A DNA stretch of 64,000 nucleotides from Macrostomum lignano (lineage: Eukaryota): assembly GCA_002269645.1 (NCBI GenBank), contig NIVC01000503.1, forward strand, positions 32,168 through 96,167, read 5' to 3'. Below are positions 5,432-64,000 of this stretch, one piece after another. The notes beneath the pieces are model-generated. The model saw nothing but the letters and a program-made list of their open reading frames with translations, did no database searches and was not told the origin of the DNA. Each line of letters begins with the position of its first letter. Within the stretch, counting starts at the first letter, position 1. Both the position numbers and the translations under genes were made by a program.

Positions 5432-5790
<359 letters not shown>

Positions 5791-6498
5791 AGACTTCTTC
5801 TACGATATTCAAACAGCATGGCAATTTTCTTTCTTGCTTAAAAGCACCCTGAACTGGAGGTATAAGTTTTATGGAGAATTTATAAAATAATTTCACTAGC
5901 TAGAAGACACTTTGCCACCTGTTCCTCATCATCTTGCGTGCGCAGGAAACCCATTAAAACTATTTTAAGTACTCACCTGTCTGCTCCTCGATTTAAGGAA
6001 AAATATTTCGTCGTCAAGTTGCTTAGTTCAGTTCCTGTTAGGATTCGAAAACATTTGTATCGATGAGGAATGGCTTTTTTGCATGGGCTTTTAGTCTTGT
6101 AAACCAGTTTGCTGTAGTAAATCGTCTGCAGTGCCAGTGCGGAACCCGTGTGCGAGAGAGAAAGACTTATAGAAGACACCACAGAGTGAATTGGGAATAA
6201 ATCAATCGATACGACGGACCAGAGCATTGAGAGCGGAGCGCTTCGCCGTGTGCACGTTTTTCCTTTCCTTTCCCCTTCTGGCCCCCTTCCCTCTTATTTC
6301 ATTTCTGGCCTCAGAAAAAAATCTTACTCTTACTCCAAGTGCAACGCGCACAGCAAACTGCCAGCTTTGTTCGAAAGAAATATAAGACTGTTGCCGCCCA
6401 ACATGCCGTTCCTTTCGTTGGTTTGAGCTGTGCAGTGTTCAGCAGTAGAATAGTTAGCTAGTTTACAAGCCATAGCTGTGTTAAATTTTAACTGCAGT

Positions 6499-30400: not shown

Positions 30401-32341
30401 AACTGGATAGATTAGCAATCCACACTGTGTCACAATGAACTGGATAGATTAGCAATCCACACTGTGTCACAATGAACTGGATAGATTAGCAATCCACACT
30501 GTGTCACAATGAACTGGATAGATTAGCAATCCACACTGTGTCACAATGAATTGGATAGATTAGCAATCCACACTGTGTCACAATGAACTGGATAGATTAG
30601 CAATCCACACTGTGTCACAATGAATTGGATAGATTAGCAATCCACACTGTGTCACAATGAACTGGATAGATTAGCAATCCACACTGTGTCACAATGAATT
30701 GTCAATAGATTAGCAATCCACACTGTGTCACAATGAATTGGATAGATTAGCAATCCACACTGTGTCACAATGAATTGTCAATAGATTAGCAATCCACACT
30801 GTGTCACAATGAACTGGATAGATTAGCAATCCACACTGTGTCACAATGAACTGGATAGATTAGCAATCCACACTGTGTCACAATGAATTGTCAATAGATT
30901 AGCAATCCACACTGTGTCACAATGAATTGGATAGATTAGCAATCCACACTGTGTCACAATGAATTGTCAATAGATTAGCAATCCACACTGTGTCACAATG
31001 AACTGGATAGATTAGCAATCCACACTGTGTCACAATGAACTGGATAGATTAGCAATCCACACTGTCACAATGAATTGGATAGATTAGCAATCCACACTGT
31101 GTCACAATGAATTGTCAATAGATTAGCAATCCACACTGTGTCACAATGAATTGGATAGATTAGCAATCCACATTGTGTCACAATGAACTGGATAGATTAG
31201 CAATCCACACTGTGTCACAATGAACTGGATAGATTAGCAATCCACACTGTGTCACAATGAATTGTCAATAGATTAGCAATCCACACTGTGTCACAATGAA
31301 CTGGATAGATTAGCAATCCACACTGTGTCACAATGAACTGGATAGATTAGCAATCCACACTGTGTCACAATGAATTGGATAGATTAGCAATCCACATTGT
31401 GTCACAATGAACTGGATAGATTAGCAATCCACACTGTGTCACAATGAATTGGATAGATTAGCAATCCACATTGTGTCACAATGAATTGGATAGATTAGCA
31501 ATCCACACTGTGTCACAATGAATTGGATAGATTAGCAATCCACATTGTGTCACAATGAACTGGATAGATTAGCAATCCACACTGTGTCACAATGAATTGG
31601 ATAGATTAGCAATCCATACTGTGTCACAATGAACTGTCAATAGATTAGCAATCCACATTGTGTCACAATGAACTGGATAGATTAGCAATCCACATTGTGT
31701 CACAATGAACTGGATAGATTAGCAATCCACACTGTGTCACAATGAATTAAGTGAGTTAATGACTGAAAACTCGAATCGGCAGGATGCTGGAGGAGCCGCT
31801 GCCCGAAGCCTCGGCCAGGCTGTACAGCGACTCAGCTGAAGCGGCCGACATCGAGGACAAAGTAGGTCAGGCTGCCCAGTGCCTCGGCCACGCCTGTCGA
31901 ATGCTGATCCGTGCTGGCAAGCTGGACGCTGCAGCCGACGTGGCCAGACGGCGGGTCGGTCAAGCTGGCCGGGATTCGAACCCGGACACCCTGTCCAAAG
32001 CTGTGCTAGCCCTAGTGGTGGTGGAGCTCGGCCGCGGAGATCTAGTAGCAGCTAGGAAAGCGTTCAACGATTCCGTGCACGTCAGCTCGTTCCAAACTGG
32101 CGACGACTGCGGCCCCCTGCAGACTCTGCTGGAGGCCTGCGAGCAGATGGACGGCGATCGGGGGCGTCAGGCCCTGCAGAATCCCGTGTTCCGCTACATG
32201 GACAATGAATTCGCTAAATTAGCTAGATCGATTCGATTGCCGGAGGCGCGCCAGAAACCGTCAGCTGCCGGTGGCGCGGCCGCAGAGGCTGCTGGTGCTG
32301 GCGCCGAGGACGCTGAAGAGTTTGACGGTGGGTTGTGTTGA
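24475..32341 (+). CDS. NAPG: Gamma-soluble NSF attachment protein (gamma-SNAP), 310 aa, 3 exons
   Basis: Exons 24475-24527 (MSSKIAEAEQHIKAAED, AG|GTAGG), 29955-30275 (SLKTGLLKMRRSPDYDSAADEYAKAAAAF...LEKGA, AA|GTGAG) and 31783-32341 (FRYMDNEFAKLARSI...EEFDGGLC*) splice in phase 2/2 and total 933 nt. The LKTG..K..PDYDSAA.EY and acidic ...GGLC terminus motifs are typical of gamma-SNAP. Confidence 0.93.
25904..27090 (-). mobile_element. Degenerate Tc1/mariner-superfamily transposon (maT/DD37D-like) in NAPG intron 1
   Basis: Minus-strand fragments: KTIRKAMLEDLRYHSYLLKVHQLLT...RIHFFSNEK (26591-26812), AAGRLYVF*QD (~26370), AH.A.TI*DWLQANI, and TPDIWPLNSPDANPLEYFYWDMLE (~26200-26280; WPxxSPDLNP motif). 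Multiple stops and frameshifts. TA|CAGGGTATGGACAATAAATTGGCAGTAG at 25902-25931 may be one TIR; I found no inverted partner. Confidence 0.75.
30341..31747. repeat. 37/39-bp tandem array (about 37 copies) filling NAPG intron 2
   Basis: Monomer TAGATTAGCAATCCACACTGTGTCACAATGAACTGGA, period measured 30371 to 30408. A 39-bp variant has AATTGTCAA. Confidence 0.98.
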
Positions 32342-33059: not shown

Positions 33060-33362
33060 TGTCACGGAGGGTTGTGGGAAGAGTCAGAGGGGGTTGTAAA
33101 GAGAGTGTCAGGGAGGGTTGTGAAGAGAGTGTCAGGGAGGGTTGTTAGGAGAGTGTCAGGGAGGGTTGTTAGGAGAGTGTCAGGGAGGGTTGTGGGGAGA
33201 GTGTCAGGGAGGGTTGTTAGGAGAGTGTCAGGGAGGGTTGTGGGGAGAGTGTCAGGGAGGGTTGTTAGGAGAGTGTCAGGGAGGGTTGTGGGGAGAGTGT
33301 CAGGGAGGGTTGTGGGGAGAGTGTCAGGGAGGGTTGTTAGGAGAGTGTCAGGGAGGGTTGTG
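33060..33362. repeat. 24-bp G-rich minisatellite (about 12 copies)
   Basis: Unit GAGAGTGTCAGGGAGGGTTG(TTAG/TGGG). Confidence 0.95.
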
Positions 33363-33627
33363 GCTGTGGTTAAGGTCAGAGCGGGTTATGGAGAGTCTCG
33401 GGGAAGGTTCAAGGGTTGTGTTTATTATTCCATAATCAGTTTGCTTTCTTTAATTGCTTCTGCATCCTTCAAATTGAGTCAAACCTCGCACATCCCCCAC
33501 TTGTGCGATACTCTAGCCACACTTTGGTAATGCCTGGATATATACGAGTACATATTGGTGTTCAATGACACCGATGAGCATTGCTAGTATACATATGTAC
33601 AATTATCTCCTTCCTTCCTCCTTCTCT

Positions 33628-35570: not shown

Positions 35571-36250
35571 ATAAAAATCAAAACTCTGTCTGTCTGTGTG
35601 TGTGTCTGTGTACAAATTTGATCGCTATGGACTCCCAAACCGCTCAACCAAATGACACAAAACTTTACACCCACCCTAAACTTACTACGGAGAATGTCTT
35701 AGGCTACCTTTAAATTTCCTAAATTTGAGTCTTCCCACCTAAAAGTACAAAAAACTGCTCAAAATTTGTGATTTTTTCACTAAATCCTCCATAGCGCCGC
35801 TCCACTTCTACCAATCCTCTTCAAATTTAACACAGATAATCTTAAACTATTTTGGCACAATCTTGTAAAATTTCGAGTCTCAAAGTTAATCCTGAGCGGT
35901 GCTGTGCACTTTTAAAGTTAGGCTGTTTTTTTCAGCGTAGCAACCACCCCAACCTCCGCCCGCCTGCCTCTCTTTCCCGATACCGATCTGGGCCCAGATG
36001 TGTAAAAGGGTTTCAAAATTGACTAACTTTCAGCTGCCATAAGTTTGCTCCACGTAAAGCGATTGACTTTAAACTTGACACAATTCTTTATTGACTCATT
36101 CTCTATCTAAATGTAAAGTTTCAACTCTGTAACTCAACCGAAAAAGAAACTGTAAGCATGTGAAGTTTGTCTGCTTTTTCTGTTGTTTGTGCCACTCACT
36201 CATTTCCCCAGAGCCAGACGAAGGGTCAGGCGATATGGCTCAATGTACAT
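35565..36250 (+). mobile_element. Diverged non-autonomous Helitron-like element related to the arm repeat
   Basis: Starts TCTACATATAAAAATC...CTGTCTGTCTG...CTCCCAAACCGCTCAACCAAATGACACAAAACTTT. It shares CCACCCCAACCTCCGCCCGC (~35945 vs ~33893) and TGTACATAGC...TGTACAGTG with the arm. The 3' end is not clear. Confidence 0.55.
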
Positions 36251-36782
36251 AGCGAATGTACAGTGTTTTGGAATAACTTTTTAATAGCCTTCTCTGCACC
36301 CCCGCGAGTGGAGAGGCGTAGAGAGGAGAGACAGTTTAGCGAGAGATTCAAACCACTGTCCTCTGTATAGACAAGTCTGCAGCAGTTTAACAGTGGATGG
36401 CAAATCAAAAGTCAAGACAAAGTGGGATGGTTTGTAAAAATAGCGAAAAATTAATGAATAACTGATTACAATGCAATCCTACTAAATTAGTTAGTTACAG
36501 CATGAAGCTTTTAACATTAAGATTCGCATAAGGTAACTTTAACATTTAAATGGCTCCTAAGAAATGCGTATTTCCTTGGTTGTTAAACTGCTGCAGACTG
36601 TGGTGGTGGAGCTGGAGATATACAAATTCCTCTCAGGGCTGCTAATTGGCCAGAAAGATGACGTGATTAAAGCATGAGAAATATAACAACAATGATAGTA
36701 CTACATCCCACAAACTGGCTTTTGAAGACAGATTTTAATCTCTAAGGCCAGATAAATAATCCAGCTCATGGCTGCGGGTTAG

Positions 36783-37137
36783 ATGAGAGTGAAAAGGAAA
36801 AGGAAGACTATTAGAAAGGGAGGAGGGGCGAGAGGGGGGGTAAGAGAAAAGATGGAAGATAACAGGAGAGACGAGGGGGTTGAGGAGAGAACAGAATATG
36901 GGACGAAGAAGCGAGAGGAGGGGAGAGAGAAGGGAGAGGAAATAGTAGAGGTGAGAAGATGGAGAGAGAAGAGGGGAGAGATGAGACAGAAGATCGATTA
37001 GAGAGGAGAGTAGAGAAGAGTGAGAAGGGATGAGAGAACAGAGAGGTAGATGAGAGAGGATCGAGAGGAGAGATTAGAAAGGATAGAGAAGAGAGGAGAT
37101 AAGAAGGGGGAGAGAGGAGTGAGAAGAGGAGATAAGA

Positions 37138-37200
<63 letters not shown>

Positions 37201-38470
37201 GGGGAGTGGGAAGATGAGATAAGAGAGAGAGTTGAGAGGAGAAAGGAGAGATGATAGAGTAAAGGGAAAAGGAGGAGAGAAGAAAGAGATGAGAGAGATG
37301 AAAGAAAAGATGATCAAGAGAATAGAGATGAGAGATGAAGGAAGAGAAAGCAGAGTGCAGAGAGACGAGAGAAGAGAATAGAGGGGAGAGAGTATAGAAG
37401 AGGGAAGAGAAGAGAGGAGTAAGGAAAGAGAAGAGTACACAGTAAAGAGGAGAGTAGAGTTGACAGAAGAGAGACCGGAATGAGAGAGCGAAGATGAGAG
37501 TGAACAGACGATATAAGAGAGGAGAGTGAGAGAGAAGAGAGAAGACAAGAGAGGGAGAGAGTATATAAGAGAAGAGACGAGAAGAAAGAAGAAAGGATCG
37601 AGTCCTCCTGAGTCAAAAAAGGGGAAAGAGAGGAGTACAAGGGGAGAGAGGTGAGAGAACATATGAGAGTAAAGATGACAGATGAGAGAGGGGAGATGAG
37701 AGAGCAGAAACGAGAGTGAACAGACGAGAGATGGGAGAGTAGAGGGAAAAGAGGAGAGATAAGAAATAAGAGATGAAAGGTGGAGACAAAGGAGAGATGA
37801 GAAGGGAGTGAGGAGAGAGGAGGGGAAGGGGAGAGAATCGAGAGGACAGGGGAAATTGGTGAAAAGGACGAGAGAGGAGAGGAAAGAGGGGAGAGATTAG
37901 AGAGAAGAGAGATAGGACAGGAGAGAGCAGAGAGATGAGAGGAGAGAGAGGGGGGAAGAGGAGAGAGAGCATGAGAGAGAAATGAGAAAAGATAAGAGAG
38001 AGAAGATAAAAGAAGAGAAATGAGAGATAAAAGAGCAAAGACGAGAGAGAAGGGAGGTGAGGGAAGAGACGATAGAAGACATGAGAGGAGAGAGTGGACA
38101 GAGGAGAGGAGAGAGTTAAGAGAAGAGAGGAAAAAGGAGAGAGTAGAGATAAGGAAAGTGTTGAGAGAGGGTAGAGTAAGGAGTGAGAAAAGAGGTGAGG
38201 GAAGAGAGAGCAGAGAGCAGAGGGAAGAGAGAGTAGAGAGCAGAGAGAAATGAGAAGAGGAAAAGAGGAGAAAGGAGATATGAGAGACCAGAGACCAGAG
38301 AGAAGAGAGGAGAGAAGAGAGAAAATAATAGAGGGGAGAGGGAAGAGACGAGAGAGGAGACGAGAGAGGAGAGGGAAGAGACGAGAGAAGAGACGAGAGA
38401 AGATAGGAAACAGAAAAGAAGATGGAAATTTCAAAGGATGCAAAGGACATAGGGAGAAGCAGAGGTAGAG
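36783..38470 (+). repeat. 1.7-kb purine-rich (GA) low-complexity tract with a perfect (GA)n core
   Basis: The plus strand is almost entirely A/G; perfect (GA)n at ~37141-37196. Confidence 0.95.
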
Positions 38471-38911
38471 GCCAGAGTTTGCCTGACATTCTGCGCAGCA
38501 CTCTAGCCAACAATATCAATGCTTGCTTCAAATCCTAATTTTACATGAATGTACACTATTTTATGTTTAACTCTATCCTAACTATTAACAAGTTTTTGTT
38601 TGAGTTTGACCTCAGATTTTAGAATACATGCAAAAATAGTTGCAGGGAATGGAGTTCCCCGGGTTCAAAATCCGCGGGTTTCAACAGCTTGTACATTATA
38701 ACCACAGCTCAAAGAAACTCTGTTTACTTGTTTCTCTTTGTAACATTCCCTCTTATTGCGTTGCCAAAGGATTACAAACGTGATACACTGATGGTTTAAT
38801 TAGAAATATAGAAACCCCTGGATGTAGTAGGTGCTCCATTTTGTTTGTTGTCTCAGAATACCCCTATATGGCACTATATATATTAGTATTTTATATAGAA
38901 ATATTACTTTG

Positions 38912-44957: not shown

Positions 44958-45096
44958 GGGATATTGTGCATAAAATAGTTTTTCTCAACTATACACTATG
45001 TAAATTAACTTCAGCAGTTTTTTATACGATTGAACATTTTCTGAGTGGATTCGGTGCCTTTTTTGTTCCCAACTTTAGTAGCTTCTCAACAACTAC

Positions 45097-45362
45097 TGCT
45101 GGCGCCCCTTGGTGCTGGCGCCCCTTGGTGCTGGCGCCCCTTGGTGCTGGCGCCCCTTGGTGCTGGCGCCCCTTGGTGCTGGCGCCCCTTGGTGCTGGCG
45201 CCCCTTGGTGCTGGCGCCCCTTGGTGCTGGCGCCCCTTGGTGCTGGCGCCCCTTGGTGCTGGCGCCCCTTGGTGCTGGCGCCCCTTGGTGCTGGCGCCCC
45301 TTGGTGCTGGCGCCCCTTGGTGCTGGCGCCCCTTGGTGCTGGCGCCCCTTGGTGCTGGCGCC
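45097..45362. repeat. 16-bp GC-rich minisatellite (about 16 copies)
   Basis: Perfect GGCGCCCCTTGGTGCT units. Confidence 0.98.
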
Positions 45363-45405
45363 ACTTTGGTCTTCTCTTCCTCACGATGACGCCCCCTACT
45401 ATATA

Positions 45406-45683
45406 CTCAACAACATTAAAAAGTCGCCACCTTTGAGAGTGCGCAGTAAATTCCAGCTCAGTATTGACTTTTGAGTGACGCAACTTGAGCAACGCGACGC
45501 AGAGTTGGGCTGGGTGATGAGGGATTGGGAAGAGCGGAGGGCAAAGATTGGATGGATTGAAGCTTCCGCCCGGTTTTCATTGTTTTTTAAGCATTTTTAA
45601 TGGTTGGCCAGGTGATAGACGCTGGTCGAAAGACACTGTCTGCTCACTGGGGCAAAGGGTGGCGACTTTTCAATGTTGCTGAG
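45406..45683. mobile_element. MITE with ~30-bp TIRs and TA flanks (Tc1/mariner-type target)
   Basis: Left TIR CTCAACAACATTAAAAAGTCGCCACCTTTG (45406-45435). The reverse complement of the right end (45653-45683) is CTCAGCAACATTGAAAAGTCGCCACCCTTTG: 2 mismatches and 1 indel. TA at 45404-45405 and 45684-45685. Confidence 0.8.
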
Positions 45684-47169
45684 TATAAATAATCCTGGTT
45701 GCGCCCCTGTTCCCTGACTCAAATCTCTTAATCTCCTGTCGGTCCAGTGCAAGCTTTATTAAAAAAACTTGTCGAACTTGCAGGACAAATAAAAGTGCAT
45801 TGGCGAATGAAATTTTAACTTTTAGGAAGGTTTTAGATTTGCATTTACGATGGTATTCATTGTGCTTAATTTATCGATATTGCAATCAACAAAATTTTTG
45901 GATAAACATCTACATGTAGGTTCTCAGTCCGCGAGACAGTGTAAAATTGGAGTGCATGGAGTGCCTCTGAGACTGAATATTAAATCCCGCCTAAGAATTA
46001 AATTATCAATTACAAAATATGAGCTTGCTTGCTTGCATACGACGTAACGAGACGTAAGTTATCAAGTATCAAGTATCAAAGTATCAAGCACCCTTAATTA
46101 ATTTCATAGCTTTTTATGACCTCGTTTGTACTAAATATTTCCAATAAAAATGATTGGTATAACTTTTAACAACTTATAGTTTAACCGCTTCTAAACCAAT
46201 TAAAAATAGAATCAGTTTGATCTTATCTTATCTTATATGCGTAGGACTAGGAGTGAAAATAGATTACGAGGCGGGGACGCGGGGCTATCATTATGCGCTG
46301 CACACAAAGCACAAAGAGAGGCGGCAGCGTTGGGAAAACCACCCCCCTTCTTTAAAAAAAACCAGGGGCAATTCAGTTCAGCTAAGGGGAGGTGGCGGGC
46401 GTGACTCACGCACCAAAATCGCCCCTCTTTCTCCTCTTTTCCACCCTCGCGTCCCTCCCCCCTTGTCTGTCGGTCTGACTTGACTGTTCCGTAATTCCCT
46501 CGCATAGGCCCAATCCGCTCAGCTCTCAAAGTGTACACAGCCAACCACCCCTCCCGACCCCTAAGTCCCGTTCATTTCACCAACCCTAAACAGACGACAA
46601 ACCAATCCCCCCCCCCTCAGTTCAGATACCCTACCTACCCAAGCCATTACCATTAAGCGATCTTCCTCGACTTGTCTTTGACACACTAGTCACTACGAAG
46701 CGAACCAAACCAACCACCAACCAAACTCAAATTGGAGCTAAAAAATAGGAAGTTCAATATATAAAGTATAGGCGGATTGAATTTTATTGCTCTCCAGTCC
46801 AGTTTATTTAGAATCTATATAACTAAATCTGAAATTATCTATCTAGTCTTAGTCTAGATTAAGGAATATTTGATATCCTTATACATAGTTCTCCAGTCAT
46901 TTCCAGACAAAGAGAATTTGGGATTAAAGAAGAGGAAGTGTGTTTTCCTGCAACCCCGGTCCCCCTTATGGTTCTTTGTCCTCATCGTTCACTAACGACT
47001 AACTATAATTACACCGAGTTAGTTGATTTTCTGTTTGCTACGTCCGGCAGCTTTGAGTCTTGCAATAAAATAAATACAGTTCATTTCTTGAACTGATTTT
47101 ACTGCTGGGTAAGTGTAATTGTTATTCATTTGTAGAACTTTTTTGCCCTAGGCTCGGTTCCTTTAGGCT

Positions 47170-48042
47170 TCAGTGAGTACTGCTACCCTCCCTGATCTTT
47201 CTGTGAGCATCGTGCTACCCTCCCTGATCCTTCAGTGAGTGCCGCTACCCTCCCTGATCCTTCTGTGAGCATCGCCGCTACCCTCCCTGATCCTTCTGTG
47301 AGCATCGCCGCTACCCTTCCTGATCGGCTGATCCTTCTGTGAGCATCGCCGTTACCCTCCCTGATCCTTCAGTGAGCACCACAACCCTTTACCCTCCCTG
47401 ATCCTTCAGTGAGTGCCGCTACCCTCCCTGATCCTTCTGTGAGCATCGCCGCTACCATTACGGATCGGCTGATCCTTCTGTGAGCATCGCCGTTACCCTC
47501 CCTGATCCTTCAGTGAGCACCACAACCCTTTACCTTCCCTGATCCTTCTGTGAGCATCGCCGCTACCCTCCCTGATCCTTCTGTGAGCAATGAGCATCGC
47601 CGCTACCCTCCCTGATCCTTCTGTGAGCATCGCCGGTACCCTCCCTGATCCTTCAGTGAGCCGCTACCCTTACCCTCCCTGATTCTTAATCAGTTAGCAT
47701 CGCGTCGCTGCTCTACTTTCCTGATCCTTCAAGCTTCAGTGAGCACCACAACCCTTTACCCTCCCTGATCCTTCTGTGAGCAATGAGCATCGCCGCTACC
47801 CTCCCTGATCCTTCAGTGAGCAATGAGCATCGCCGCTACCCTCCCTGATCCTTCTGTGAGCAATGAGCATCGCCGCTACCCTCCCTGATCCTTCTGTGAG
47901 CAACGAGCATCGCCGCTACCCTCCCTGATCCTTCTGTCAGCAATGAGCATCGCCGCTACCCTCCCTGATCCTTCTGTGAGCAATGAGCATCGCCGCTACC
48001 CTCCCTGATCCTTCTGTGAGCAATGAGCATCGCTGCTACCCT
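47170..48042. repeat. 33/40-bp irregular tandem array
   Basis: Core CTACCCTCCCTGATCCTTC(T/A)GTGAGCATCGCCG (33 bp). The 40-bp units carry an extra AATGAGC. Confidence 0.93.
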
Positions 48043-48631
48043 GAATAACATCCCGTAACTAGGAGTAAAAAGCGGCCCAAAGCAAGCCGGTCCAGTAATT
48101 AGGTTACTATTGGTTTTTTAGACCCCCATTCGCGAATTCTTATTCTTAGGCCAACCACGGAAGGAAGAAATGAATTTGGAAACAGTGTAGAAAAAGAATC
48201 TTATGTTTCGTTTGGTTAAAGCTTTTTTCGGGTCAAAAATCCTCTAAACCCCTGACTCCCTGAGGTCCATCTATTGAGCTCTGTCTCTCTCTTCCCAACT
48301 TCCTGAGTCCCTGGCAGTCGATATTTTCCATTGAGGTAATTCGATTCAGGCTTCATTCATTTGGTTCATGCGACTCTCAACTCTGAAGCACGGCAAATGC
48401 CAACACTGCTAGAGCCTGAGGCCGAGAGGCTGAGTTGAGCTGCTGAGGACACTTTTTTCCTTGAAACACAATTTCACATCTGGCATCTGACTGTCCCAAT
48501 TGGTGAGCACAAAAACTTTCTTGTTCGCCTTCCTAATTCGAGCTTTTCGTTTCTCCTCATGCTCGCTCATTGTGAGAAAAGTCAATTAGAAAAACTATCC
48601 AATCCAACGTTTCCAATCAAATGGATTTTCC

Positions 48632-49230
48632 CTCTTCTCTCCGTCCTTTCCTCTCCTCTCCTCTCCTCTCCCCTCCTCTCTGCCCCCTCCTCTCTCTCCT
48701 CTCTGGCATCTCCCTTCCTCTGACCTCTCCTCTCCTCTCTGCCCTCTCGCCTCCTCTCTCTCCTCTCTGGCATCTCCCTTCCTCTGACCTCTCCTCTACT
48801 CTCTACCCTCTCCCCTCCTCTCTGCCCTCTCCCCTCCTCTCTGCCCTCTCCCCTCCTCTCTGCCCTCTCCCCTACTCTCTACCCTCTCCCCTCTATCTAC
48901 CCTCTCCCCTCCTCTCTGCTCTCTCCCCTCCTCTCTGCCCTCTCCCCTACTCTCTGCCCTCTCCCCTCCTCTCTGCCCTCTCCCCTCCTCTCTGCCCTCT
49001 CCCCTCCTCTCTGCCCTCTCCTCTTCTCTCTGCCCTCTCCTCTACTCTGTGCTCTCTCCTCCTCTCCTCTCCTCTCCCCTCCTCTCTGCCCCCTCCTCTC
49101 CCCTCCTCTCTGTCCTCTCCTCTCCTCCGCTCTCTCCCCTCCTCCGCCTTTTTCTCTCTTCTCCACTCCACCCTTCTCTCTGCTCTCTTTTCTACTCTTC
49201 ACCTCTCCTCTACGCTCTCCTTTCCACTCT
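48632..49230 (+). repeat. Pyrimidine-rich (CT) low-complexity tract
   Basis: The plus strand is almost only C/T; recurring CTCTCCCCTCCTCTCTGCC units. Confidence 0.93.
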
Positions 49231-49618
49231 GTGTCGTATCATCTTATAAACTGGCAAATACAAGCGTCGCAGTAGCCAGCAGACTGCTTTGCCAGGTCTA
49301 TTTGTAATTTTTATTACCAAATCAAATAAAGCTCTGCGTCACGTGGGTCCTAAGACTCGGAACACAGGCATGAATACAGGTTTCCTTAATTGGATTGTAT
49401 TATTATAGTCCGACCCTTTTATGAGGGCTAAAAGGTATAGAAAACTCTACGAAACATCTTTTTTGAGCAAGTTTCTTGCACCTGAGTGCATGCACTGCAT
49501 GCCCTAAGCTGTGGCTCGAAAGGCAGACAGGTAGGCTGGCTGCTCCAGTTCACTTGGAGCGGTCGGTAATCATGTCTCCGGCCCGAACTCGTGTTCTAGA
49601 GTGCGAGTATAGAACTTA

Positions 49619-52600
49619 CTAGCCAATCCCAACCCCCGTTGGGGCTTTCCGTCCAAACTCCAACCACAGTTTTCCCCATCCACAAAATCCCCGATGCAAA
49701 GAATCTCACATGCAAAGAATCCCCCATCCAAAGAACCCCTATCGATAGAATCACCGATCCGAAGAATTCCCCATTCAATGAATCCCCTACTCAAGAAATT
49801 CCCGATCTACAGAAGCCCCCTATCTAAAGAATCCCCATCCAAAGAATCTCTCATCCACAGAATCCCCATCCAAAGAATCCCTCATCCACAGAATCCAAAT
49901 ACCCTGGTATAAAGAATCCTCCATCCATCCCTATCCAAAGAATTTCCTCATTCATTCCTATCCAAAGAATTTCCTCATTCATTCCTATCCAAAGAATTTC
50001 CTCATTCATTCCTATCCAAAGAATTTCCTCATTCATTCCTACCTAAAGAATCCCCCATCCATCCATATCCAAAGAATCCCCCCCAATTAATCCCCGTCCA
50101 AATAATTCACATCATAATCCCCATCTAAATAAACCATAGATCTCCCATCTAAATAATCCGCCATCAAAGAAATAATTGGCCAAAGAATTCCCTCATCTAA
50201 AGAACCCCGTCCGAATAATCCCCATCCAACGAATCCAAAGAATCTCCCATCCAAATAATCCCCCTATTAATAGAATTCTTGGCCAAAGAATCCCCTCATC
50301 TAAAGAACCCCCGTCCAAATAACCCCCCCCCATCTAGCGAATCCTTCATCTAAAGAATCAACTATTCGAAAAACCCTCCATCGAAACAATACCCCATCAA
50401 AGTAATTCCCTAATGAATCACCTATCCAAAGATATCCATTAGAAGCATCCCTCATCCAAAGAATCATCAATCCGTAGAATTCCCCAAAAACTTAACATCT
50501 CAGCAATTCCCCCGAGCCTCGACACCTCATAAAATTCCCCCAAGCCTTGACATCTTACCAATTTCCCCCCGTCCAAAGCCTTGACATCTCAGCAGTTCCC
50601 CGTTAAGCCTTGAAATCTCAGCAATTCTCCCCCACAAGTCTTGCATCTCAGCAAGTCCCTCTTAAGCCTTCACATCTCATTAATTCCAATAGGTAAGATT
50701 TTATACATGTATTTCAATAATTCCCCCTATAAATCTTGACATCTTAGAATTCTCTTTCGAGCAAGCATCCCCTGATAGAAAGTACCCCCACCAAGATTAG
50801 TGAAACAATTTCCTCAGCTAGCCAATTCCAACCCCCGTTGGGGCTATTCGTCCAAACTCCAACCAGTTTTTCCACGCAATAAAATTTCACCCAACTGAAT
50901 CTCAAATTTAAAGAATCCCCCATCGAAAGAATCCACCACCCATAGAATCCACGATACAAAGAATCTCACATGCAGAGAATCCCCATCCAAAGAAACCCCC
51001 ATCGATAGAATCCCCGATCCGAAGAAGCCCCATCCATCCCTATCCAAAGAATCCCCCATCCACAGAATCCCGATCAAAATAATGCAAATATTCTCTCATC
51101 CAAATAAACCTCCACAAAAGAATCATTGAATCTGAAGAATCTGAATCTTGAGTCCCCTCATCTAAAGAACCCCGTCCAAATAATCCAAAGAATCATACTC
51201 CAAAATAGTCTCCATCTAAAGAATCCAAAGAATCTCCCATCTAAATAATCCCCCATCAATAAAATCCTAGGCCAAAGAATCCTTCATCTAAAGAATCCCC
51301 ATTCAAAGAACCCTCCATCGAAAGAATCTCCCATCGATGGAATTTCCTAATGAATCAGCTATCTAAAGATATCTATTAGAAGCAGCCCTCATGGAAGGAA
51401 CCCCCAATCCAAAGAATTCCCCCCCCCAAGACTTGACATCTCAACAATTCCCCCCAAGCCTTGATACCTCAGTTCATTCTCTCTTAAGCTTTGACATCTC
51501 AGCAATTCGCTCTCAAGACTTGAAATTTCAGGAATTCCCCTGCCAAGACTTGACATCTCAGCAGTCCTCCAAGTAAGCCTTTATATCTCAGTGATTCCCC
51601 CAGTAAGCCTTGACATCTCAGCAGTCCTCCAAGTAAGCCTTTATATCTCAGTGATTCCCCCAGTAAGCCTTGACATCTCAGCAGTCCTCCAAGTAAGCCT
51701 TTATATCTCAGTGATTCCCCCAGTAAGCCTTGACATCTCAGCAGTCCTCCAAGTAAGCCTTTATATCTCAGTGATTCCCCCAGTAAGTCTTAACATCTCA
51801 GTGATTCCCCCATGCCTTGACATTTTAGAAATTCCCCCCACGCCAGCAGCTCCCCCATTAAGCCTTTATATCTCAGAAATTCCCCCCACGCCAGCAGTTC
51901 CCCCATTAAGCCTTTATATCTCAGAAATTCCCCCCCAAGCCTTAACATCTCAGCGATACCCCCACCAAGCCTTGGCGTCTCAGAAAGTCCCTCTTCAGCC
52001 TTGAGAGCGAATTGCTGAGATGTCAAAGCTTAAGAGAGAATGAACTGAGGTGTCAAGGCTCAGTGATTTCCTCAGTAGGTCTTCACAACTTAGCAATTTC
52101 TCCCCGTCCAAGAGCCTGACATCTCAGAAATTCCCCCACGCCTTGAAACCTCAGCAATTTCCTTTTGGCATCTCAGCAAGTCCCTTTAAGGCTTGACATC
52201 TCAGTAATTCCCCAGTAAGCCTGCATATCTGAATAATTCCCCAGTATGTCTTGACATCTTAGCAATCTCACCCGATCAAGCATGCCCTAAGAGCAAGCGT
52301 CCTTTCGATAGCAAGCATCCCCTGATAGAAAGTAACCCAAGCAAGACAGTGAAACAATTAACTCAGCTAGTACAATAATTAGTTTCTTATCTAGTGCAAT
52401 AATCCTTTTCAAAATTCAAAGTTTAATAAAAAAATTTGAATATACTACATGAACGCTCGTAGCTTCTTCTTTTTTACCTGATTTACCGGACGTTTTTTAA
52501 AGTTAAAATTTTTAATAAAAAAACTTTTACTCTCTAAAAATTCGAACCCACGTCGCTGCAATAGCAGTTCAGTCTGTTCACCTCTAGGCTAACTCATCGT

Positions 52601-54409: not shown

Positions 54410-56230
54410 ATGTCCGAGCTCAACCTATTCTCGCTGCTGTGGCGCCGGGACACCCAGAGCCTTCAAGAGTTGCTCGACTGCTATGAGCTTGCTGAATCGA
54501 ATCGCAGCATCCTCATCAGCATACGTTGCCTTCGCGAGCAATGCACCTGTGCCTTGAATAATCAAGAGGTGCTCATGCTTAAAGCGGTTCGGAACTGCAA
54601 ACTAGTGGCAGGCAGCTGGAGCAAGACCAAGTCAACGCCATCGATGCCTCATCACGCGTTGAGCAAACAGTCGGCATCGTCTTCAAGTACTAGCGGCAAC
54701 GAAAAAAGCATTAGAGTGATTCTCACCGACTACTCAACCGGCTGGTTCGAAGTTCTCAACGAGAGTGGTGGCTCCATTCCCTACTGGACCAGCGTAAAGG
54801 ACGTGGCTCGCCACAAGCCGCAATCGGTCTTTCTACGCAAAGACCAGAAATGCCTATTCGCAAAGAACAAAGCCGGCAATGGCAACTTTGACCTGAGCGC
54901 TGAAAGCACTGGTCTGCTTAAATCCGGCACAGTGCTCAACTATATTGAGAGTGGCAAATTTCGCGTGCAGAAGCATCGGAAAGTCAAGGAGCTGCCACTT
55001 GTAAAATGCTCCGATACAAACGGTCATCTGGTCTTCCTTAACTTAGAGGACAAGTGCGCTGTGAGTCCGGTGGCGGGAGCTGAGAACATCTCAGGTGTAC
55101 ACACGCTGCAGTCTTTGTTGAGCAAGTTCCAGTTCCCACTCAGTGTTAGGCCAGTGTTCGGGCCTCCTCTGCCCTGGTTGTCGTTCTCCGATCGACACAG
55201 TCTGCGTCTGACTTCGTGTAATCGCGGCGACCTACTGTTCCTGGCGTCGCTATCGAATCCGGAACGCTTCTTCGTGGTAACGCCGGAAATGCTCAACCAG
55301 CACGCGTTTCGAGTTGGCGAATCAGAGCTCGGTCATCACGTTCAGCTGTTGGAGCGGCACTCCACCAGAGTGACTCAGTTTCTACAGTCCTATCATCCAT
55401 TTGAAGCGCTGCGTTATCTAATTCGACATCTTGGCGATGCGACAAATCAATTGGCGCCTCAGGAGCGATGCTTGCTGCAGCCAGGAGACCAGCAGGTGTT
55501 ACCACTGGCTCAACAGCAGGAACAACAACCACTTGAAGTTGACGATCTTCTAGACGAAGTAGAGGATATTTACTTCTACGTGAGAACTGGGCGCATGCCG
55601 GCGCATTCACACTTCCAACAGCAGCAGAAACTGCAACAGCAGCAGCAGTTGCAGCAGCACAGCAAGTCCAATTCGTCTAACGACAGCGGCCTCGTTCTTG
55701 TAAATCCACCACGAATTCGCCTAGCCGAGTGCATGGGGGTGCCCGCCGCGCCGCGCCCGTTCCGTGCCACCAGCTGCGACGACTTGCTTGAGGCTGGTCG
55801 AGAGAAGCGTCGTCAACAACAAGAGGTACCGCAGCAGCAGCAGCTTTACCAGCAACCTCATCAGATGACGCAACAGCAGCAGCCCCAGCAGCAACAGCAG
55901 CAGCAGCAGCCGCAGCAGCAGCAGTACCGTCCGCGTCAGGGACCGCCGCCTCCATTGCCACCGCGCAAGTACAGCAACTCCCCTGCTGCGCATATACGGC
56001 ACGATTCGAGGCTACAGCAGCAGTACAGTAACGGAATTGGAGCCGCTCGCCACGTGGCCATGGTAACCTGCAACGGTAACGGCGTCTCGATGGCGTCCAG
56101 CGTTGGCAGCAATTTGCACGGCAGTCGCAGCTCCATGCACGCGATGCAGTTCTCCGGAGGGGCGTCTTCCGCTGCTATGGGTGCAGCTGCTGCCCCTAGC
56201 GGCTCCAATCTGAGCGGCGACTTCCTTTGA
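54410..56230 (+). CDS. CABIT-domain adaptor protein (Themis/GAREM/Serrano superfamily), 606 aa, with Q-rich and proline-rich C-terminus
   Basis: Uninterrupted 606-aa ORF with motifs I recognise from invertebrate CABIT proteins: GWFEVLNESG, SVKDVARHKPQS, VKCSDTNGHLVFL, ENISGVHTLQSLLSKFQFPLSVRPVFGPP. Also DEVEDIYFYVRTG and an SH3-ligand PPPLPPRK. An acceptor-like TTCTAG| lies at 54360, upstream of the ATG. Confidence 0.75.
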   Translation: MSELNLFSLLWRRDTQSLQELLDCYELAESNRSILISIRCLREQCTCALNNQEVLMLKAVRNCKLVAGSWSKTKSTPSMPHHALSKQSASSSSTSGNEKSIRVILTDYSTGWFEVLNESGGSIPYWTSVKDVARHKPQSVFLRKDQKCLFAKNKAGNGNFDLSAESTGLLKSGTVLNYIESGKFRVQKHRKVKELPLVKCSDTNGHLVFLNLEDKCAVSPVAGAENISGVHTLQSLLSKFQFPLSVRPVFGPPLPWLSFSDRHSLRLTSCNRGDLLFLASLSNPERFFVVTPEMLNQHAFRVGESELGHHVQLLERHSTRVTQFLQSYHPFEALRYLIRHLGDATNQLAPQERCLLQPGDQQVLPLAQQQEQQPLEVDDLLDEVEDIYFYVRTGRMPAHSHFQQQQKLQQQQQLQQHSKSNSSNDSGLVLVNPPRIRLAECMGVPAAPRPFRATSCDDLLEAGREKRRQQQEVPQQQQLYQQPHQMTQQQQPQQQQQQQQPQQQQYRPRQGPPPPLPPRKYSNSPAAHIRHDSRLQQQYSNGIGAARHVAMVTCNGNGVSMASSVGSNLHGSRSSMHAMQFSGGASSAAMGAAAAPSGSNLSGDFL

Positions 56231-57964: not shown

Positions 57965-59068
57965 TACATCCTGTGGTTGTTTGCCATCAATTTACCATAC
58001 ACAAGGACCACTGTATATAACAGTTACAGCATATCAATGGTTCTTGGTCCTACATGTACATTCTGAGGTTGTTTGCTATCCGGTTTCCCGGTCCTATACA
58101 TGTACATCTTGAGCTTTTGGTCATCCGCAGCCTCCCAGAGTCCCAGATCCTGAGGTTTTTGCAATCGTGACCTCCCAGATCCTGATGTTTGTAAACAACG
58201 AGCATCATACATGTAGCATGTACACAGCACATTGCAAGAATTTTAATAATAGACTATAAGCAAGTTTTCTTTTAAATTTTGATTTTTCTGCGATAAACTT
58301 AAATGATGAAGATTGTCAGTATCCGTCTATCCAGCACTCTGGCAGCACAAGGAAATTACATGTAAGAGCGCAAGTCGACCTACAGTACATGTACAGGTGC
58401 AGCAATTGTTCTGTAATACAGTAAATGATAAAACAACAATCTACACATACGATCTCCGGACACGTGTGTTGTTTATGTTATACATGTATTGTAGGAAATT
58501 TCCGGACTGAAAACTGCATGCACACGCTCTGTCACGCATGAAGAGTGTATCTGTCAAGCATCCGTTTAAATTTTGGATTTGAAGCGAAAAAGTTGCATTT
58601 TCACTATATAGATTCCAGCTGAAATCCAGATTCCAAAGTCCCTTGCAGGTTCGCCTTTGGGTATGGTTTTTACAAAGTATAAATAAATCGCCTTATTTAC
58701 ATGAAAACTTATAAACGTACGTGTACATGTTAAATAAATTCATAGAAACTGCATGGAATCTTAGCATAAAGCACGCAAGTTTGGCCTATACATGCAATTC
58801 TGTTTTCGGAATTTGTTGTATTATTTATAATCAGGCCTCGCAGCCTACATTACTCACATTTAGGTAAGTATCTGGTGTTCCATTGTGGTCTACTCAAACA
58901 ATTCCAAATTTTACTGATAGACAGATGTTGATTAACACCCACAGATCACAGCGATCAAGCTGCGAGTTGAATTTTGAAACATCATGCATGCTCCTTGATA
59001 AGTGCAATTAGTACATGTACACTCGTTGACAACTTTTAGAGTTTACTTGTACCACGGGGCTCGATAAA

Positions 59069-62000
59069 ATGGGCAATCAAAACTCCCAAGTCGATGAAAA
59101 TCGTCAGCGGACTCCGGACTCCCAGGCTTCAGATTTAGCCGGGCGTTTAAAAAGTGGCAATGTTGATTTGAGCTGCCGCGAATTCTCTGCTGAGTATGGC
59201 GTAGACATGCAGCCCCAGTTACTAGCTGAGCTGCTCAAACTGTCTCCTGATCGAAACCGATGGTGCTCGGAGGCGGTACTATTGTTCGCTTCTAATCGAC
59301 ACTGGCGGCTGGTTCAACAGCTTCTGCATGCTATCGAAGACTCTAAAGTTAGAGAAATTTGTGCTGCAGAGGCTGCAAAGTGCGCGGCCATGTGGCAGGA
59401 CTGGCGAGAAGCCGAGAATTTAGTGCTTCAAGTGATGAACGAGCGCCTTCGCCAGACTGTCTGCAGCGACTTGGCCAAGTTTGCGGCTAGCGCTTGTAAC
59501 GGTGATGTGGCGGATATGTTCACCTGCATTATCGCCGATCAAAATATGCAAGACGATTGCTTGCACAAATCGGCCACTGCGGCTGCTGCTGCCTGTGACG
59601 CTACAATTACATCAGGAGAGGGACGCGCCGAGCTTGCTGCTAGGCTAGTAGCTAAAATTCAAAATCCAGAATCTCGCGACCGATGCAGTCGCGAAGTCGC
59701 TGGTTTCCTCTCCGTCTCCGGTCACTGGGAAATGGTCGAGCGCCTTTTCGTTGGCATCGAAGAACAAAAAATCAAGGAGGATTGCAGCTCCGAATTGGCT
59801 CCGAGGGCAGCTGAATCTGGCAGATGGCAGATCGCCGCTAGCCTGGCTGCTAGCATAGTCGAGCAGTCGACTCGAGATTCAGTCTGCTTGAAGGTGCTTG
59901 AGACAGCCGTTGTCAAGGATCAGTTTCAGCCACTTGCTAATGAGCTAGTACCAACCATGTCCAAAGCAGCGGTGGACCAGAGCTGCAGCGACTGTGCCGT
60001 CCTGGCAGCTGCTTGGGAACGCTGGGATAACGCTGGTGCAGCTGTCCGCTTCATCAAAGACCAGAAAGTGCAAGACGAATGCCGAATCTGCATTGCTAAG
60101 CAGGCTGGCCAGAAAGAGGCCTGGTCTGTAGCTGTCGAATTTCTCGGCGGCCTTGCTGACATAAGCAGAAGAAACAGCTGCTTCAAAGAGCTGGCTAAAG
60201 CTGCCGGAAGCAAACATGAATTCAAAGCGTTTGTTCAGCTAGTCAATGAAATTACTGACGTTTCTATACAGGACGACTGTCGATACGACGTCACTTGCAC
60301 CCGTGTTAAGAATAAAGATATTGACGCCGCAAACACCATTGCACAATCGATTGCTGATAAAACCGTCAAAGACAGGTGCCTCAGCGAGGCCGCTCGCTTG
60401 TGCACAGCAGTTGACCAGTGGAATTCAATTACTCCGTTGGTCAGTACGATTTCCGATCAGCGACTTAAGGACGACTGTTGCGCTTGCATAGCGAGGACTG
60501 ACAATGAGCTTAAACACGCGGAGGAAGTCTTAAAACTCGTGCAAATTATCGACAATTCAAAGCGGAAGGATTCGTGCTGTATTGAACTGAGTCGAACCGC
60601 GGCCAGCCTTGAGGACTGGGAGACGCATAAAAGTCTACTGAACTTAGTCTCGGATGCTAGCGTGCAGGATCGGTGCTGCGAAGAGGCTGCCATATGCGCC
60701 GCATCCATGGCCAATTGGGGGCAAGCCGTCCGATTGTGTGGCGAAATTCAACGCTCCTCGGAATTGCGCAACAGCTGCCTGAGAGAGTTAGCTAAACTTG
60801 CCTTGGGCAGGCGTCGATACGACGTTGCCGAGGAAGTCGCAGCCAAAATTTCTGATTGCGCAACTAAAAACTATTGCTATAGTGATACTGCCACTCTGTC
60901 CGCTACCTGGGAAGACTGGGAAGATGCCGATAATTTAGCAAAGCAAATTACTGACGGTTGTTTGAGAGACCAGTGCTATTCGAATATTGCACTAACTTGT
61001 TGTGCTGCTAAAAAATGGATCGAGGCTAATCGTTTTGGGCAGAAAATTCGTGACCAGGACGTTAAAGATCGCTGCTTCAAGGAATTGGCAGTCGGCGCCG
61101 CAAATGCTCAGCTGTGGGCAGAGGCAGATAAATTCGTACTCGAACTTTGCAAGTATGAAGTCCAGCTTACTTGCATTACTGAGGTGGCTAAGCTAGCTTC
61201 AACAGCTCAAGAGTGGGCTGTTGCACTGAGCGTTCTGCAACTGATATCGGAGCAGGACAATCGAGAACGAGGCTTCTATGATGTTTCTGTAAGCGCTGTT
61301 CATGCCGAAAACACTAAAGCTGCTGTTAATGCCTTATCGATGATTCGTAATATAGAATTTCGCGATTTGTGCACTGTCGAGCTGGTGAAGCTTTCAGCCG
61401 TCACCGGCTTGGCAAATGTTGCCGAGATGGTGAAGTTGACCTCTAGCAGAGACATTGCCGAGCTGTGCCGTTCTGATGCTATAAAAGCTGCAGCTTTAAG
61501 TGGCAGTTTCAACCTGTTGATGCAGCAACTACCACCGAAAGCCAGCGTGTTGAGCGTCTTTGATTTCGATAGCCGCGCTGGTAAACTCCAACCGTCTGAA
61601 TGGCAGTTGCGAGGTCTCTCCAACTGCGCCATTGCTGCCGAGAGTGAGCAAACGATTACAAGACTACTGGACGACATGAAGCAGCTACACAGAATCCAAC
61701 TGTTTGAAGAGTGCATCTCATTCGGCTACTCAGCCCTGGCCGTTTTGATTGTACCCAATCTCAACCAGGTGGATCAGAGAGACGAAACAGGCAGTACCGC
61801 ACTGATGCTAGCTACTGATGAGGATCGTCACGAGATTGTAAAAAGCCTGCTAGAAAGCGGAGCATCAGTGCAGGCCGCAGACAACCTGGGTCGAACTGCT
61901 TTGGCTCGAGCGTTTCTGTCTGGCAACGAGAAGATCGCCAAGACTTTGATTGACAGTGGCTCCAACGTCCATCACCGAGACCGCCAGGGCTTAACGTGTG

Positions 62001-64000
62001 CGCAGATGGCTGAAATGGCTGGACAACGAGAAGTGTTACGCTTGTTAGACTATCGCAGTTTAGAGAGGTGACATTCTAATTCATTTTTATAACTTATTAT
62101 TAATTCCAATTTAAAAAGCGATCATTTGCATTTTAGCTCGAGTTTGACGGAAGCGTTTGTTGAAACTGCCACGGAAGATGAGTAAGAAACGAGCTTATAC
62201 CTGAGCTGTCTTAAACTCGAAATTTTGTTGGTCGCGACTCTCTACGGGTCTCTCCACGACACTTGCCTTTGCAAAAATGGTCTCCAATAAAAAAAACCCT
62301 TCAGAAGTTCGACGCCAGAAGAACTGAGCCTTGACCTGCACCAGCGGCTTAACCAGGCTGGATTCACCAAGTCAGCCGCGATCAAGCAGCAAGCGCTTGC
62401 CTCTAATCTGGAAGGGGCAGCACAGGAGCTGTCGCTTGAGCACAGGCTACTCATTGGCAGCTGCATCGAGGGCTGGGGCTACGGAAATTTGGCACTGAAA
62501 ACACCAACTGATGCAGCGGCTAAGCGTGACCGTTTAGGCACAAATGACATTAACTGGACTATTTTAGTCGGAGGTAAGAAGAAAATATTTCACTTGGCTG
62601 ACGACTGCCAGTGCGAGTTTGCTGACGATGAAGAGCAGCAGCTGGAAGCGGTGAAGAACGGTCGCATTCATTTGCAATCGCGCATAGGTTAGTACGAGCT
62701 AGCTACATGTATTGGGCAAATTTTAATGCTTATACTCGTAGTCGTAGAACACATCCTGGTATTAACCATTATACTAGCTGAGCTAAATACTTTGGCGGGG
62801 AACGGGGACTGCCTTCCAAATTGTATTGGACCTAGAGGAACCTATTACGAGCTATCAAAAATGAACACTCGCAGGAAGTTAGTGGCCACCCTAGCGCAAC
62901 GCATTGTCCCACAATCATCGGTAAGGCAATACTGCCCGCATTACGCTGACTCCTTAGCACATGCCAGCGCGCGCATGGACAATGTACACAGGCACGCACT
63001 CATGTGTGCAAGCGTTCACACAGAATTCTATCATAAAATTACTAAATAGGAATTCCGCTCCTGTGGGGTTAAAGATAGCACCATTGGCACCATATGGACA
63101 GTGCAAAACTCATCATTGCTTGCGGAAATCGGGTCGAAAAAATAATGGAGAAATATTTATTGAACTGGCTGCTGTTCTCATACGTGTCATAAATAAAGCA
63201 AAGCAACACAAAGGCATTGCTGCCCATTCCACCGACTCCCCTGAGCAGGCACACAAGCGCGCGGATACGTAGGCAGTCATGCGCATAGCAGTGTACAGCG
63301 GCCCTGACTTTCTAATTATCAGGAACTTGTACATTTCATAGTGCCGAATTAATTGGGGATTAGCCCTTCTGTGCGTTAATTTCACAAGCAGACTCAAGCC
63401 GAGATTCCAGTTTCTATGTTTTTCCATCATATTACCACCCACCATTAATTTTCAGGCCAAGTTCCCATCGTAACAAAAGGCTGCAGCACCCGGCCGCAAC
63501 AGACAACATGTCACGCCTTCCGCTGCTGTAGCTGCTATCGTGCGGATCGAGTCCGCTTGCTCCTGTCGGAAGCAAGCGCGGAGCCTGTGCACCTGATCAG
63601 AACGATTGTAACCAGCTCAGCTAGAGAGCTACAGATCAGCTTTAGCAATCAGGAAAGGAAAATTATGCAGTCCCTGTGCACAGTTCAGGGCCAGCTATTC
63701 GTCTTGATCAAATTCATTTTTGTAGAACTGCTGCCAAATCGATTCTCAACTACTGGCTTGAGCAGCTACCACGCGAAGATGCTGCTATTTTACATGATGG
63801 AGAAGCACAGGCTCAATATCGAATGCTGGCAGTCTGCGCACTTGATCCAGTTACTACAAGAGTCGCTCAGTTTGATGCTGCAGTTCTTTGATTCGAATGC
63901 TTCATCGGAAATCTGCATGCCGCACTTCTTCATGCCGGATGTGATGCTTCAATTCCGAAATGCCGGTCTTGGAGGCGACTTTCAGCGCACCAAAGAGAAG
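59069..64000 (+). CDS. Helical-repeat + ankyrin + Mab-21/cGAS-like (cGLR) nucleotidyltransferase-fold protein; 3' end beyond the window (at least 1324 aa)
   Basis: Exons 59069-62067, 62137-62181, 62305-62687 and 63456-(64000) join in frame through GT-AG introns of 69, 123 and 768 bp (phases 2, 2, 1), giving 3972 nt with no stop. N-terminus MGNQNS; ~33-aa repeats at ~59252-61500; ankyrin repeats GSTALMLA/GRTALARA/GLTCAQMA at ~61769-62046. Mab-21 motifs: LLIGSCIEGWG (GS at 62456), DINWTILV, CHAFRCC, ISFSNQERKIMQSL (63635), LFVLIKFIF, GLSSYHAKMLLFYMME (63755), W...L..LL...L, CMPHFFMP (63914). Confidence 0.85.

Follow-up and report, generated by a model that had tools for sequence, protein, structure and literature searches.

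We analysed a 64,000-nt stretch of the Macrostomum lignano genome (contig NIVC01000503.1, positions 32,168 to 96,167 of the forward strand), here called the window, whose own coordinates are used throughout. Big exons, small introns and abundant simple repeats give it an overall eukaryotic character. From position 59069 onwards it carries a plus-strand gene, cut by the window end at 64000, that encodes a large ankyrin protein with a predicted cGAS/Mab-21 fold. The list of open reading frames (ORFs) shows this locus as a 1000-aa ORF at 59069-62071 (+). Splicing of four exons (59069-62067, 62137-62181, 62305-62687 and 63456-64000) yields 3972 nt, or 1324 codons, with zero stops. An earlier reading of the DNA (hereafter the sequence-only reading) had proposed a hidden multi-exon gene with three GT-AG introns and a stop-free frame of this length, and both the splicing and the junctions of an annotated protein, PAA93319.1, confirm it.

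Exon 1 (59069-62067; aa 1-999 plus 2 nt of codon 1000) encodes an MGNQNSQ start, a repeat solenoid and canonical ankyrins. It is followed by intron 1 (62068-62136, 69 nt, gtgaca..ttttag) and by exon 2 (62137-62181), a micro-exon in the linker that contains SSLTEAFVETATED and is also found in PAA93319.1; as it is 45 nt long, the reading frame is kept with or without it. Intron 2 (62182-62304, 123 nt, GTAAGA..CAG, gtaaga..cttcag) leads to exon 3 (62305-62687), which encodes the N-terminal helices and first strands of a nucleotidyltransferase (NTase) core, including a Gly-Ser loop, IGS (62456-62461), and a degenerate metal-binding strand, NDINW (62543-62557; D1096 and N1098), both placed by sequence and paralog alignment. 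After intron 3 (62688-63455, 768 nt, GTTAGT..CAG, gttagt..tttcag), exon 4 (63456-64000) supplies the remaining NTase core and the Mab-21 C-terminal helical lobe until the window end truncates it; its RPQQTTCHAF (63491-63520) has Thr at the position of the paralogs' third catalytic Asp. All three introns have GT..AG ends and polypyrimidine- or AT-rich acceptors, and no tRNA or Rfam element that would explain the 768-nt intron 3 or the flanks was found. The Mab-21/cGAS motifs quoted earlier are indeed present in exons 3 and 4: IGSCIEGW at 62456-62476, ISFSNQERKIMQSL at 63635-63676, GLSSYHAKMLLFYMMEK at 63755-63805 and CMPHFFMPD at 63914-63940.

The TGA of the 1000-aa ORF (62069-62071) overlaps the intron-1 donor (AG|GTGA, 62066-62071), and retention of the 69-nt intron 1 would therefore give an ankyrin-only isoform of 1000 aa. 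Upstream of the start codon, within 59025-59068, lies an AG acceptor-like site (cttttag|ag) about 30 nt 5' of the ATG, which could be a spliced-leader trans-splice acceptor or the end of an intron in the 5' untranslated region.

An exhaustive profile (hidden Markov model, HMM) search found 207 relatives, the closest of which is PAA93319.1 (P0002), a 2111-aa "hypothetical protein BOX15_Mlig026614g1" of M. lignano. Our model aligns to its first 1324 residues without gaps and with 21 differences, and the exon 1 product is 98.4% identical to its residues 1-1000. The residues at all three junctions are identical (intron 3 falls at ..HLQSRIG/QVPIVTK..), so that the junctions and the micro-exon are reproduced in the annotated protein. 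Its locus on NIVC01000031.1 is collinear with window positions 53.3-64.0 kb at 97.7-98.4% DNA identity, and in both copies a CABIT-domain gene lies upstream; in the window this is a single-exon plus-strand gene at 54410-56230 encoding 606 aa (CABIT E=1.5e-9) with a Gln-rich tail. Divergence between the copies is 0.9% in exons and 2.3% in introns. The M. lignano assembly holds 180 Mb in blocks that are at least 95% identical (PMC5730564). Given this collinear, gapless match to an annotated locus, the window gene is, by sequence comparison, an allelic or duplicated copy, about 98% identical, of the known and transcript-supported gene BOX15_Mlig026614g1, and the window holds 1324 of its 2111 codons, in exons 1 to 4. 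A word-index search was far less sensitive: with the C-terminal 325 aa it returned one fragment (P0001, 35% identity, for which an exact-sequence contig look-up gave no match), and with the N-terminal 903 aa nothing. These negatives carry no weight, because the same search also missed the 98%-identical P0002 and paralogs of 35-42% identity, all of which the HMM search recovered.

The near-identical copy bears on the suggestion that separate ankyrin, Mab-21 and caspase genes, or trans-spliced cistrons, have been read through into one artefactual gene model. About 7% of assembled M. lignano transcripts are polycistronic precursors (PMC5730564), and a stop exactly at the intron-1 donor means that an unspliced message would encode a 1000-aa ankyrin-only protein. 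The annotation behind PAA93319.1, however, is a genome-guided RNA-seq transcript assembly in which the TBONE pipeline used trans-splice and poly(A) signals to split precursors before ORFs were called with TransDecoder (PMC5730564). Moreover, all junctions are in frame, over 2111 codons in the annotated locus and 1324 in the window, and the order of N-terminal repeats, ankyrins and Mab-21 recurs in many paralogs, with Mab-21, ankyrins and caspase together again in the paralog P0158. Exons 2-4 could not initiate a protein of their own, because their first in-frame ATG lies well into exon 4, at "IMQSL". We consider an artefact very improbable.

The protein opens with MGNQNSQ (59069-59089), a pattern match, with Gly2 and Ser6, to the PROSITE-type signature for N-myristoylation, G-{EDRKHPFYW}-x(2)-[STAGCN]-{P}. 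A Met-Gly start is shared by the paralog P0156 (MGNADSK) and absent from P0005, P0010 and P0100. Myristoylation of Gly2 may tether the protein to a membrane.

Behind this start, aa ~66-830 (59264-61558, +) consist of about 23 repeats of 33 residues with the consensus h..I.D...[KR]D.C..[ED].A..AA....W..A..L, each predicted as a long helix followed by a short one. The periodicity is evident in the autocorrelation (0.47 at lag 33, 0.30 at lag 66 and 0.10 at lag 99, with no other lag between 20 and 129 above -0.35). AlphaFold2 predicted residues 1-1000 at a mean local confidence (pLDDT) of 80, with 23 helix pairs within residues 62-820. Pfam ankyrin models did not match these repeats directly. By phmmer they are homologous to the N-terminal repeats of P0005, P0010 and P0100 (E~1e-28), and these score with Pfam Ank_2 at E=4.6e-34, 1.7e-26 and 2.2e-16; the paralog repeats are ankyrin-like in their text, with CC.E replacing TPLH (e.g., CCREAASSAAARGHIEIVQFLV), and MAFFT aligns them in register with those of the window. 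The best Foldseek matches of residues 1-1000 were ankyrin-1, the 24-repeat domain of AnkB, DARPins and tankyrase, mixed with TPR superhelices. Three canonical ankyrin repeats follow at aa 883-971 (61715-61981, +; Pfam Ank_2 E=2.3e-14, also Ank_4 and Ank), as anticipated. Together, this transitive evidence from sequence and models indicates that the repeats at aa ~66-830 are a diverged ankyrin array continuous with the three canonical repeats. The sequence-only reading had counted about 22 helical repeats, a figure that the 23 helix pairs and the 33-residue period uphold; the separate repeat class it saw in them dissolves, and solenoid and ankyrins are one module type because the helical repeats are themselves diverged ankyrins. 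With the giant ankyrin solenoids, i.e., the 24-repeat membrane-binding domain of AnkR/AnkB and NOMPC, the window protein shares more than 20 consecutive 33-residue repeats, whereas its repeats have CC.E or I.D...KD.C instead of TPLH and GADVN, a long predicted first helix (17 residues) and a short loop.

The region encoded by exons 3 and 4 is predicted to adopt the cGAS/Mab-21 fold. Pfam Mab-21_C (PF20266) matched at aa 1241-1305 (63749-63943), close to the cutoff of 24.1 bits: the isolated 325-aa C-terminal part scored 24.2, the full model 22.2 and P0002 residues 1000-1570 scored 26.9. This domain was detected in 15 of 17 family members scanned, while PF03281 matched neither the window model nor any of the 17. 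The family profile, run against PDB sequences, returned no match even at E<=10, and it is the fold comparison that links the domain to cGAS. As the window truncates the domain, the corresponding segment of the 98%-identical P0002 (residues 1000-1570) was modelled with AlphaFold2 from a 17-sequence family alignment, which gave pLDDT 81.2 and a predicted template-modelling score (pTM) of 0.84. Foldseek placed this model with human cGAS (E=1.7e-7), MAB21L1 (6e-6), the coral cGAS-like receptor Sp-cGLR1 (3.7e-4) and MiD51 (1.5e-3), as well as MiD49, with target-normalised TM scores of about 0.5 for these cGAS-fold neighbours; the bacterial cGAS/DncV-like nucleotidyltransferases (CD-NTases) DncV and CdnD matched weakly only (E~0.05-0.1). 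About 180 residues beyond the helical lobe form a family-specific extension that is confidently predicted. The Mab-21 assignment of the sequence-only reading thus stands at the level of the fold; its proposed profile, PF03281, does not match, and PF20266 is borderline.

Li et al. (2023, PMC9980059) define cGAS-like receptors (cGLRs) by the active-site motif h[QT]GS [X8-20] [DE]h[DE]h [X50-90] h[DE]h, together with homology over both lobes and AlphaFold similarity to known enzymes. With respect to the latter two, a profile built from the window C-terminal region and P0001 matched paralogs over positions ~16-390 with E-values down to 1e-86, among them relatives of proteins in Table S3 of that paper, and the AlphaFold2 model resembles cGLR/CD-NTase enzymes. 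The active site differs. The window copy and P0002 read L-I-G-S, X28, D-I-N-W, X59, Q-T-T and fail the defining catalytic motif, as D-I-N stands for [DE]h[DE] and Thr for the third acid. The Gly-Ser loop and first Asp are thus retained and two of three catalytic acids lost (N1098, and Thr at the third site). Within the modelled segment, these sites sit on the predicted strands 62-66, 98-103 and 159-167. Most of the 36 aligned family sequences have GS..D[IVLM]D..hDh, as in P0005 (M-T-G-S, X20, D-I-D-W, ..Q-D-T); the motifs of P0001 and P0017 are degenerate as well, and a second caspase-bearing pair, P0158/P0011, has DMNW..AES.

These residues argue against a catalytically active cGLR, in which the solenoid would sense a ligand and the Mab-21 domain would make a second messenger for STING or another receptor. 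The cGAS fold predicted by the model, the retained Gly-Ser loop and first Asp, and homology to full-motif paralogs that Li et al. (PMC9980059) curated as cGLRs and cloned for screening all speak for this. On the other side, both copies share the departures (IGS with an X28 spacing, D-I-N-W, T-T) from the motif, the predicted strand offers no nearby acid, and a catalytic D-to-N change was used as a substrate-bound mutant of DncV (title of PDB 4u0m). Furthermore, no flatworm is among the sources of active enzymes named by Li et al. (PMC9980059). We therefore regard an active enzyme as improbable, and the role in nucleotide second-messenger synthesis first envisaged for this gene is not supported by its DIN and Thr residues. 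Fold and sequence suggest that the NTase fold of the window protein is a pseudo-enzyme; for the protein, a role as protease-linked sensor scaffold is more probable than one in the synthesis of a nucleotide signal.

The protease lies past the window. At the NIVC01000031.1 locus, exon 4 continues to P0002 residue 1575 and three further exons follow. Pfam assigned Ank (883-971), Mab-21_C (1241-1305), a second Ank block (~1649-1744) and Peptidase_C14 (PF00656; 1896-2107, E=2.8e-27) to P0002. Its caspase domain aligns with caspase-3 over p20 and p10 (E=8e-15); SHG/QSCRQ stands opposite SHG/QACRG of caspase-3, the His/Cys dyad is intact in sequence and both Arg residues of the S1 pocket are kept. 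The sequence-only reading had described a four-part architecture, which is not supported: its helical repeats are ankyrins, and the real protein adds a second ankyrin block and a caspase. A second paralog group with Mab-21, ankyrins and caspase is represented by P0158 (1444 aa), and a triad-degenerate NTase is paired with the caspase in both caspase-bearing groups found. Neither NACHT nor NB-ARC, the central NTPases of NLR/STAND sensors, matched in Pfam scans of the window model or full-length P0002, and neither a CARD nor a death domain in P0002. The coupling of sensor to effector suggested before gains support from the fused caspase.

The loss of catalytic residues could also mark a decaying duplicate, that is, a pseudogene in the making that derives from a formerly active ankyrin-cGLR (ANK-cGLR) and has no function of its own. 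The genome has undergone large recent duplications (PMC5730564), and pN/pS between the copies is about 0.43, which does not indicate strong constraint and, from 21 non-synonymous and 14 synonymous changes (35 differences), is weak evidence. Yet both copies maintain long open frames (2111 codons at the annotated locus, 1324 in the window), exon divergence is 2.6-fold below intron divergence, the same substitutions are common to both copies, and the catalytic and S1 residues of the P0002 caspase are intact. Decay is, in our view, very unlikely.

By sequence, the gene belongs to a Macrostomum-specific ANK-cGLR expansion, most members of which have the full nucleotidyltransferase triad. Paralogs catalogued by Li et al. 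(2023), such as PAA93208.1, PAA68676.1 and PAA86972.1 (in this analysis P0005, P0010 and others), belong to the same HMM family (E down to 1e-86) and share the 33-residue N-terminal repeats, the canonical ankyrin triplet with its linker, and a Mab-21 domain with a long C-terminal extension. They keep hTGS..DIDW..hDh where the window gene has IGS..DINW..TT, and the window gene, as seen in P0002, adds the second ankyrin block and the caspase. Elsewhere in the family, P0014 has two tandem Mab-21 domains, and the gene models of P0008 (2381 aa) and P0038 (3379 aa) look over-extended.

Part of this family has already been published. In Table S3 of Li et al. (2023, PMC9980059), five M. lignano members of the ANK-cGLR family appear among 140 cloned enzymes that were screened, and Table S2 gives PAA accessions with Ank_2; the paper also mentions fusions of cGLRs with ANK, TPR and death domains. 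The active enzymes named there are those of insects, anemones, molluscs, hydras and corals, with no flatworm among them, and M. lignano does not appear in its species table. A caspase or peptidase fusion is absent from its text, which is no proof, as its tables were covered in part; our literature searches did not find a described fusion of a cGLR or Mab-21 protein with a caspase. The sequence-only reading knew of no description of its architecture; a near-identical gene is, however, in GenBank, and Macrostomum ANK-cGLR fusions are listed, with five paralogs cloned, in Li et al. 2023 (PMC9980059). The ANK-cGLR family is public and partly published; for a caspase joined to a triad-deficient cGAS fold, no description is apparent in the literature covered here.

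Among known proteins, human cGAS and animal cGLRs (Sp-cGLR1, PDB 8gjy) are the best Foldseek matches and have the bilobed NTase core and helical lobe in common with the window protein, which shares 13-15% identity with them and differs by an incomplete triad, the missing PF03281 match and its large ankyrin and caspase appendages. MAB21L1 and MiD51/MiD49, which have no known cyclase activity, share the fold and offer precedents for a nucleotide-binding or scaffolding role, but they are single-domain or membrane-anchored adaptors without ankyrin solenoid or protease and are distant in sequence. Induced-proximity caspase platforms (the apoptosome with Apaf-1, inflammasome NLRs) and the caspase-like proteases that nucleotides activate in bacteria (SAVED-CHAT) couple a repeat-domain sensor to an effector of the caspase family. 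In the protein described here, by comparison, sensor and caspase are on one chain with a central NTase fold, and no NACHT/NB-ARC, CARD, death or SAVED domain is present.

In the full domain order, a start that may be N-myristoylated precedes about 23 diverged and three canonical ankyrins, the cGAS/Mab-21 fold with its extension, a second block of ankyrins and, finally, a caspase. We propose that the dead NTase fold would act as a ligand- or partner-binding switch and the ankyrin solenoid as a recognition or autoinhibition surface. Activation would work through induced proximity of the caspase domains, as it does in initiator-caspase platforms, and the output would be proteolysis or cell death in place of cyclic-nucleotide signalling to STING. 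The best overall explanation, which we hold with moderate confidence, is a pseudo-enzyme that serves as a sensor scaffold and controls the caspase on its own chain.

Several points weigh against it. The functional role is inferred. Asn at the second metal-ligand position is no formal bar to residual catalysis or nucleotide binding, and the equivalence of residues to cGAS derives from paralog alignment, motif spacing and predicted strands. Evidence for transcription comes indirectly, by way of how the assembly was annotated, and is not gene-specific; the pN/pS estimate, as said, adds little. Since the caspase exons lie past position 64000, the window's own caspase copy is unreadable, and it is the 98%-identical locus alone that shows this domain. 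A rough neighbour-joining tree does not place the two caspase-bearing groups as sisters, so the link between triad loss and caspase could be a coincidence of few cases; the tree is too rough to tell one origin of the fusion from two.

As a refinement of this explanation and not an exclusive rival, the pseudo-NTase pocket might, by analogy, bind a nucleotide without turnover and gate the caspase allosterically, the ligand being a metabolite or the signal of intact-triad paralogs. Its structural neighbours include MiD51 and MAB21L1, for which PDB titles name bound ADP and CTP, respectively; the Gly-Ser loop is retained, and active-looking and degenerate paralogs occur side by side in one genome. 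Against this, the argument is by analogy, and we consider such gating possible but rather unlikely.

Elsewhere in the window, the minus strand at ~8200-22140 carries large exons from a gene for a dynein heavy chain of axonemal type (Pfam DHC_N2, AAA_6, AAA_9, microtubule-binding stalk, Dynein_heavy D6 and AAA_lid_11). The ORFs at 2305-2874 and 3823-4635 are nearly identical over their first ~60 residues (MGSDVTIPQAEGSSADADAG...), which suggests a local duplication of ~1.5 kb; the longer one (3823-4635), the only one of the pair scanned, had no Pfam match. A plus-strand ORF at 31784-32341 weakly matches SNAP (soluble NSF attachment protein), at 24.0 bits where the cutoff is 25; judged by this match, it is probably a single exon from a gene of the SNAP family. 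Long tracts of simple or tandem repeats lie at 5374-5896, 33072-33530, 36000-38500, 44966-45492 and 46000-52000, with an extreme strand skew (GC skew of +0.57 at 36-38 kb and down to -0.5 at 48-52 kb), and fit the repeat-rich genome of M. lignano.

According to the prevailing view, cGLRs are enzymes that signal via diffusible nucleotides. One could imagine a circuit that bypasses STING, in which intact-triad ANK-cGLR paralogs make a nucleotide signal and the dead cGLR fold receives that signal, or a pathogen ligand, and switches on the fused caspase. While highly improbable on present evidence, such a circuit, if true, would mirror in an animal, with a duplicated synthase as its starting material, the caspase-like proteases of bacteria that CD-NTases or cyclic oligoadenylates (cOA) activate. 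Transgenesis and RNA interference exist for M. lignano. In the large private ANK-cGLR expansion of Macrostomum, at least two branches fuse a caspase directly to a cGAS fold that lacks the full triad. If this fusion is functional, the cGAS fold would have gained a new, non-catalytic use as the sensor or switch of a death protease, and the gene would offer a one-polypeptide model for wiring cGLR-type recognition to proteolysis.

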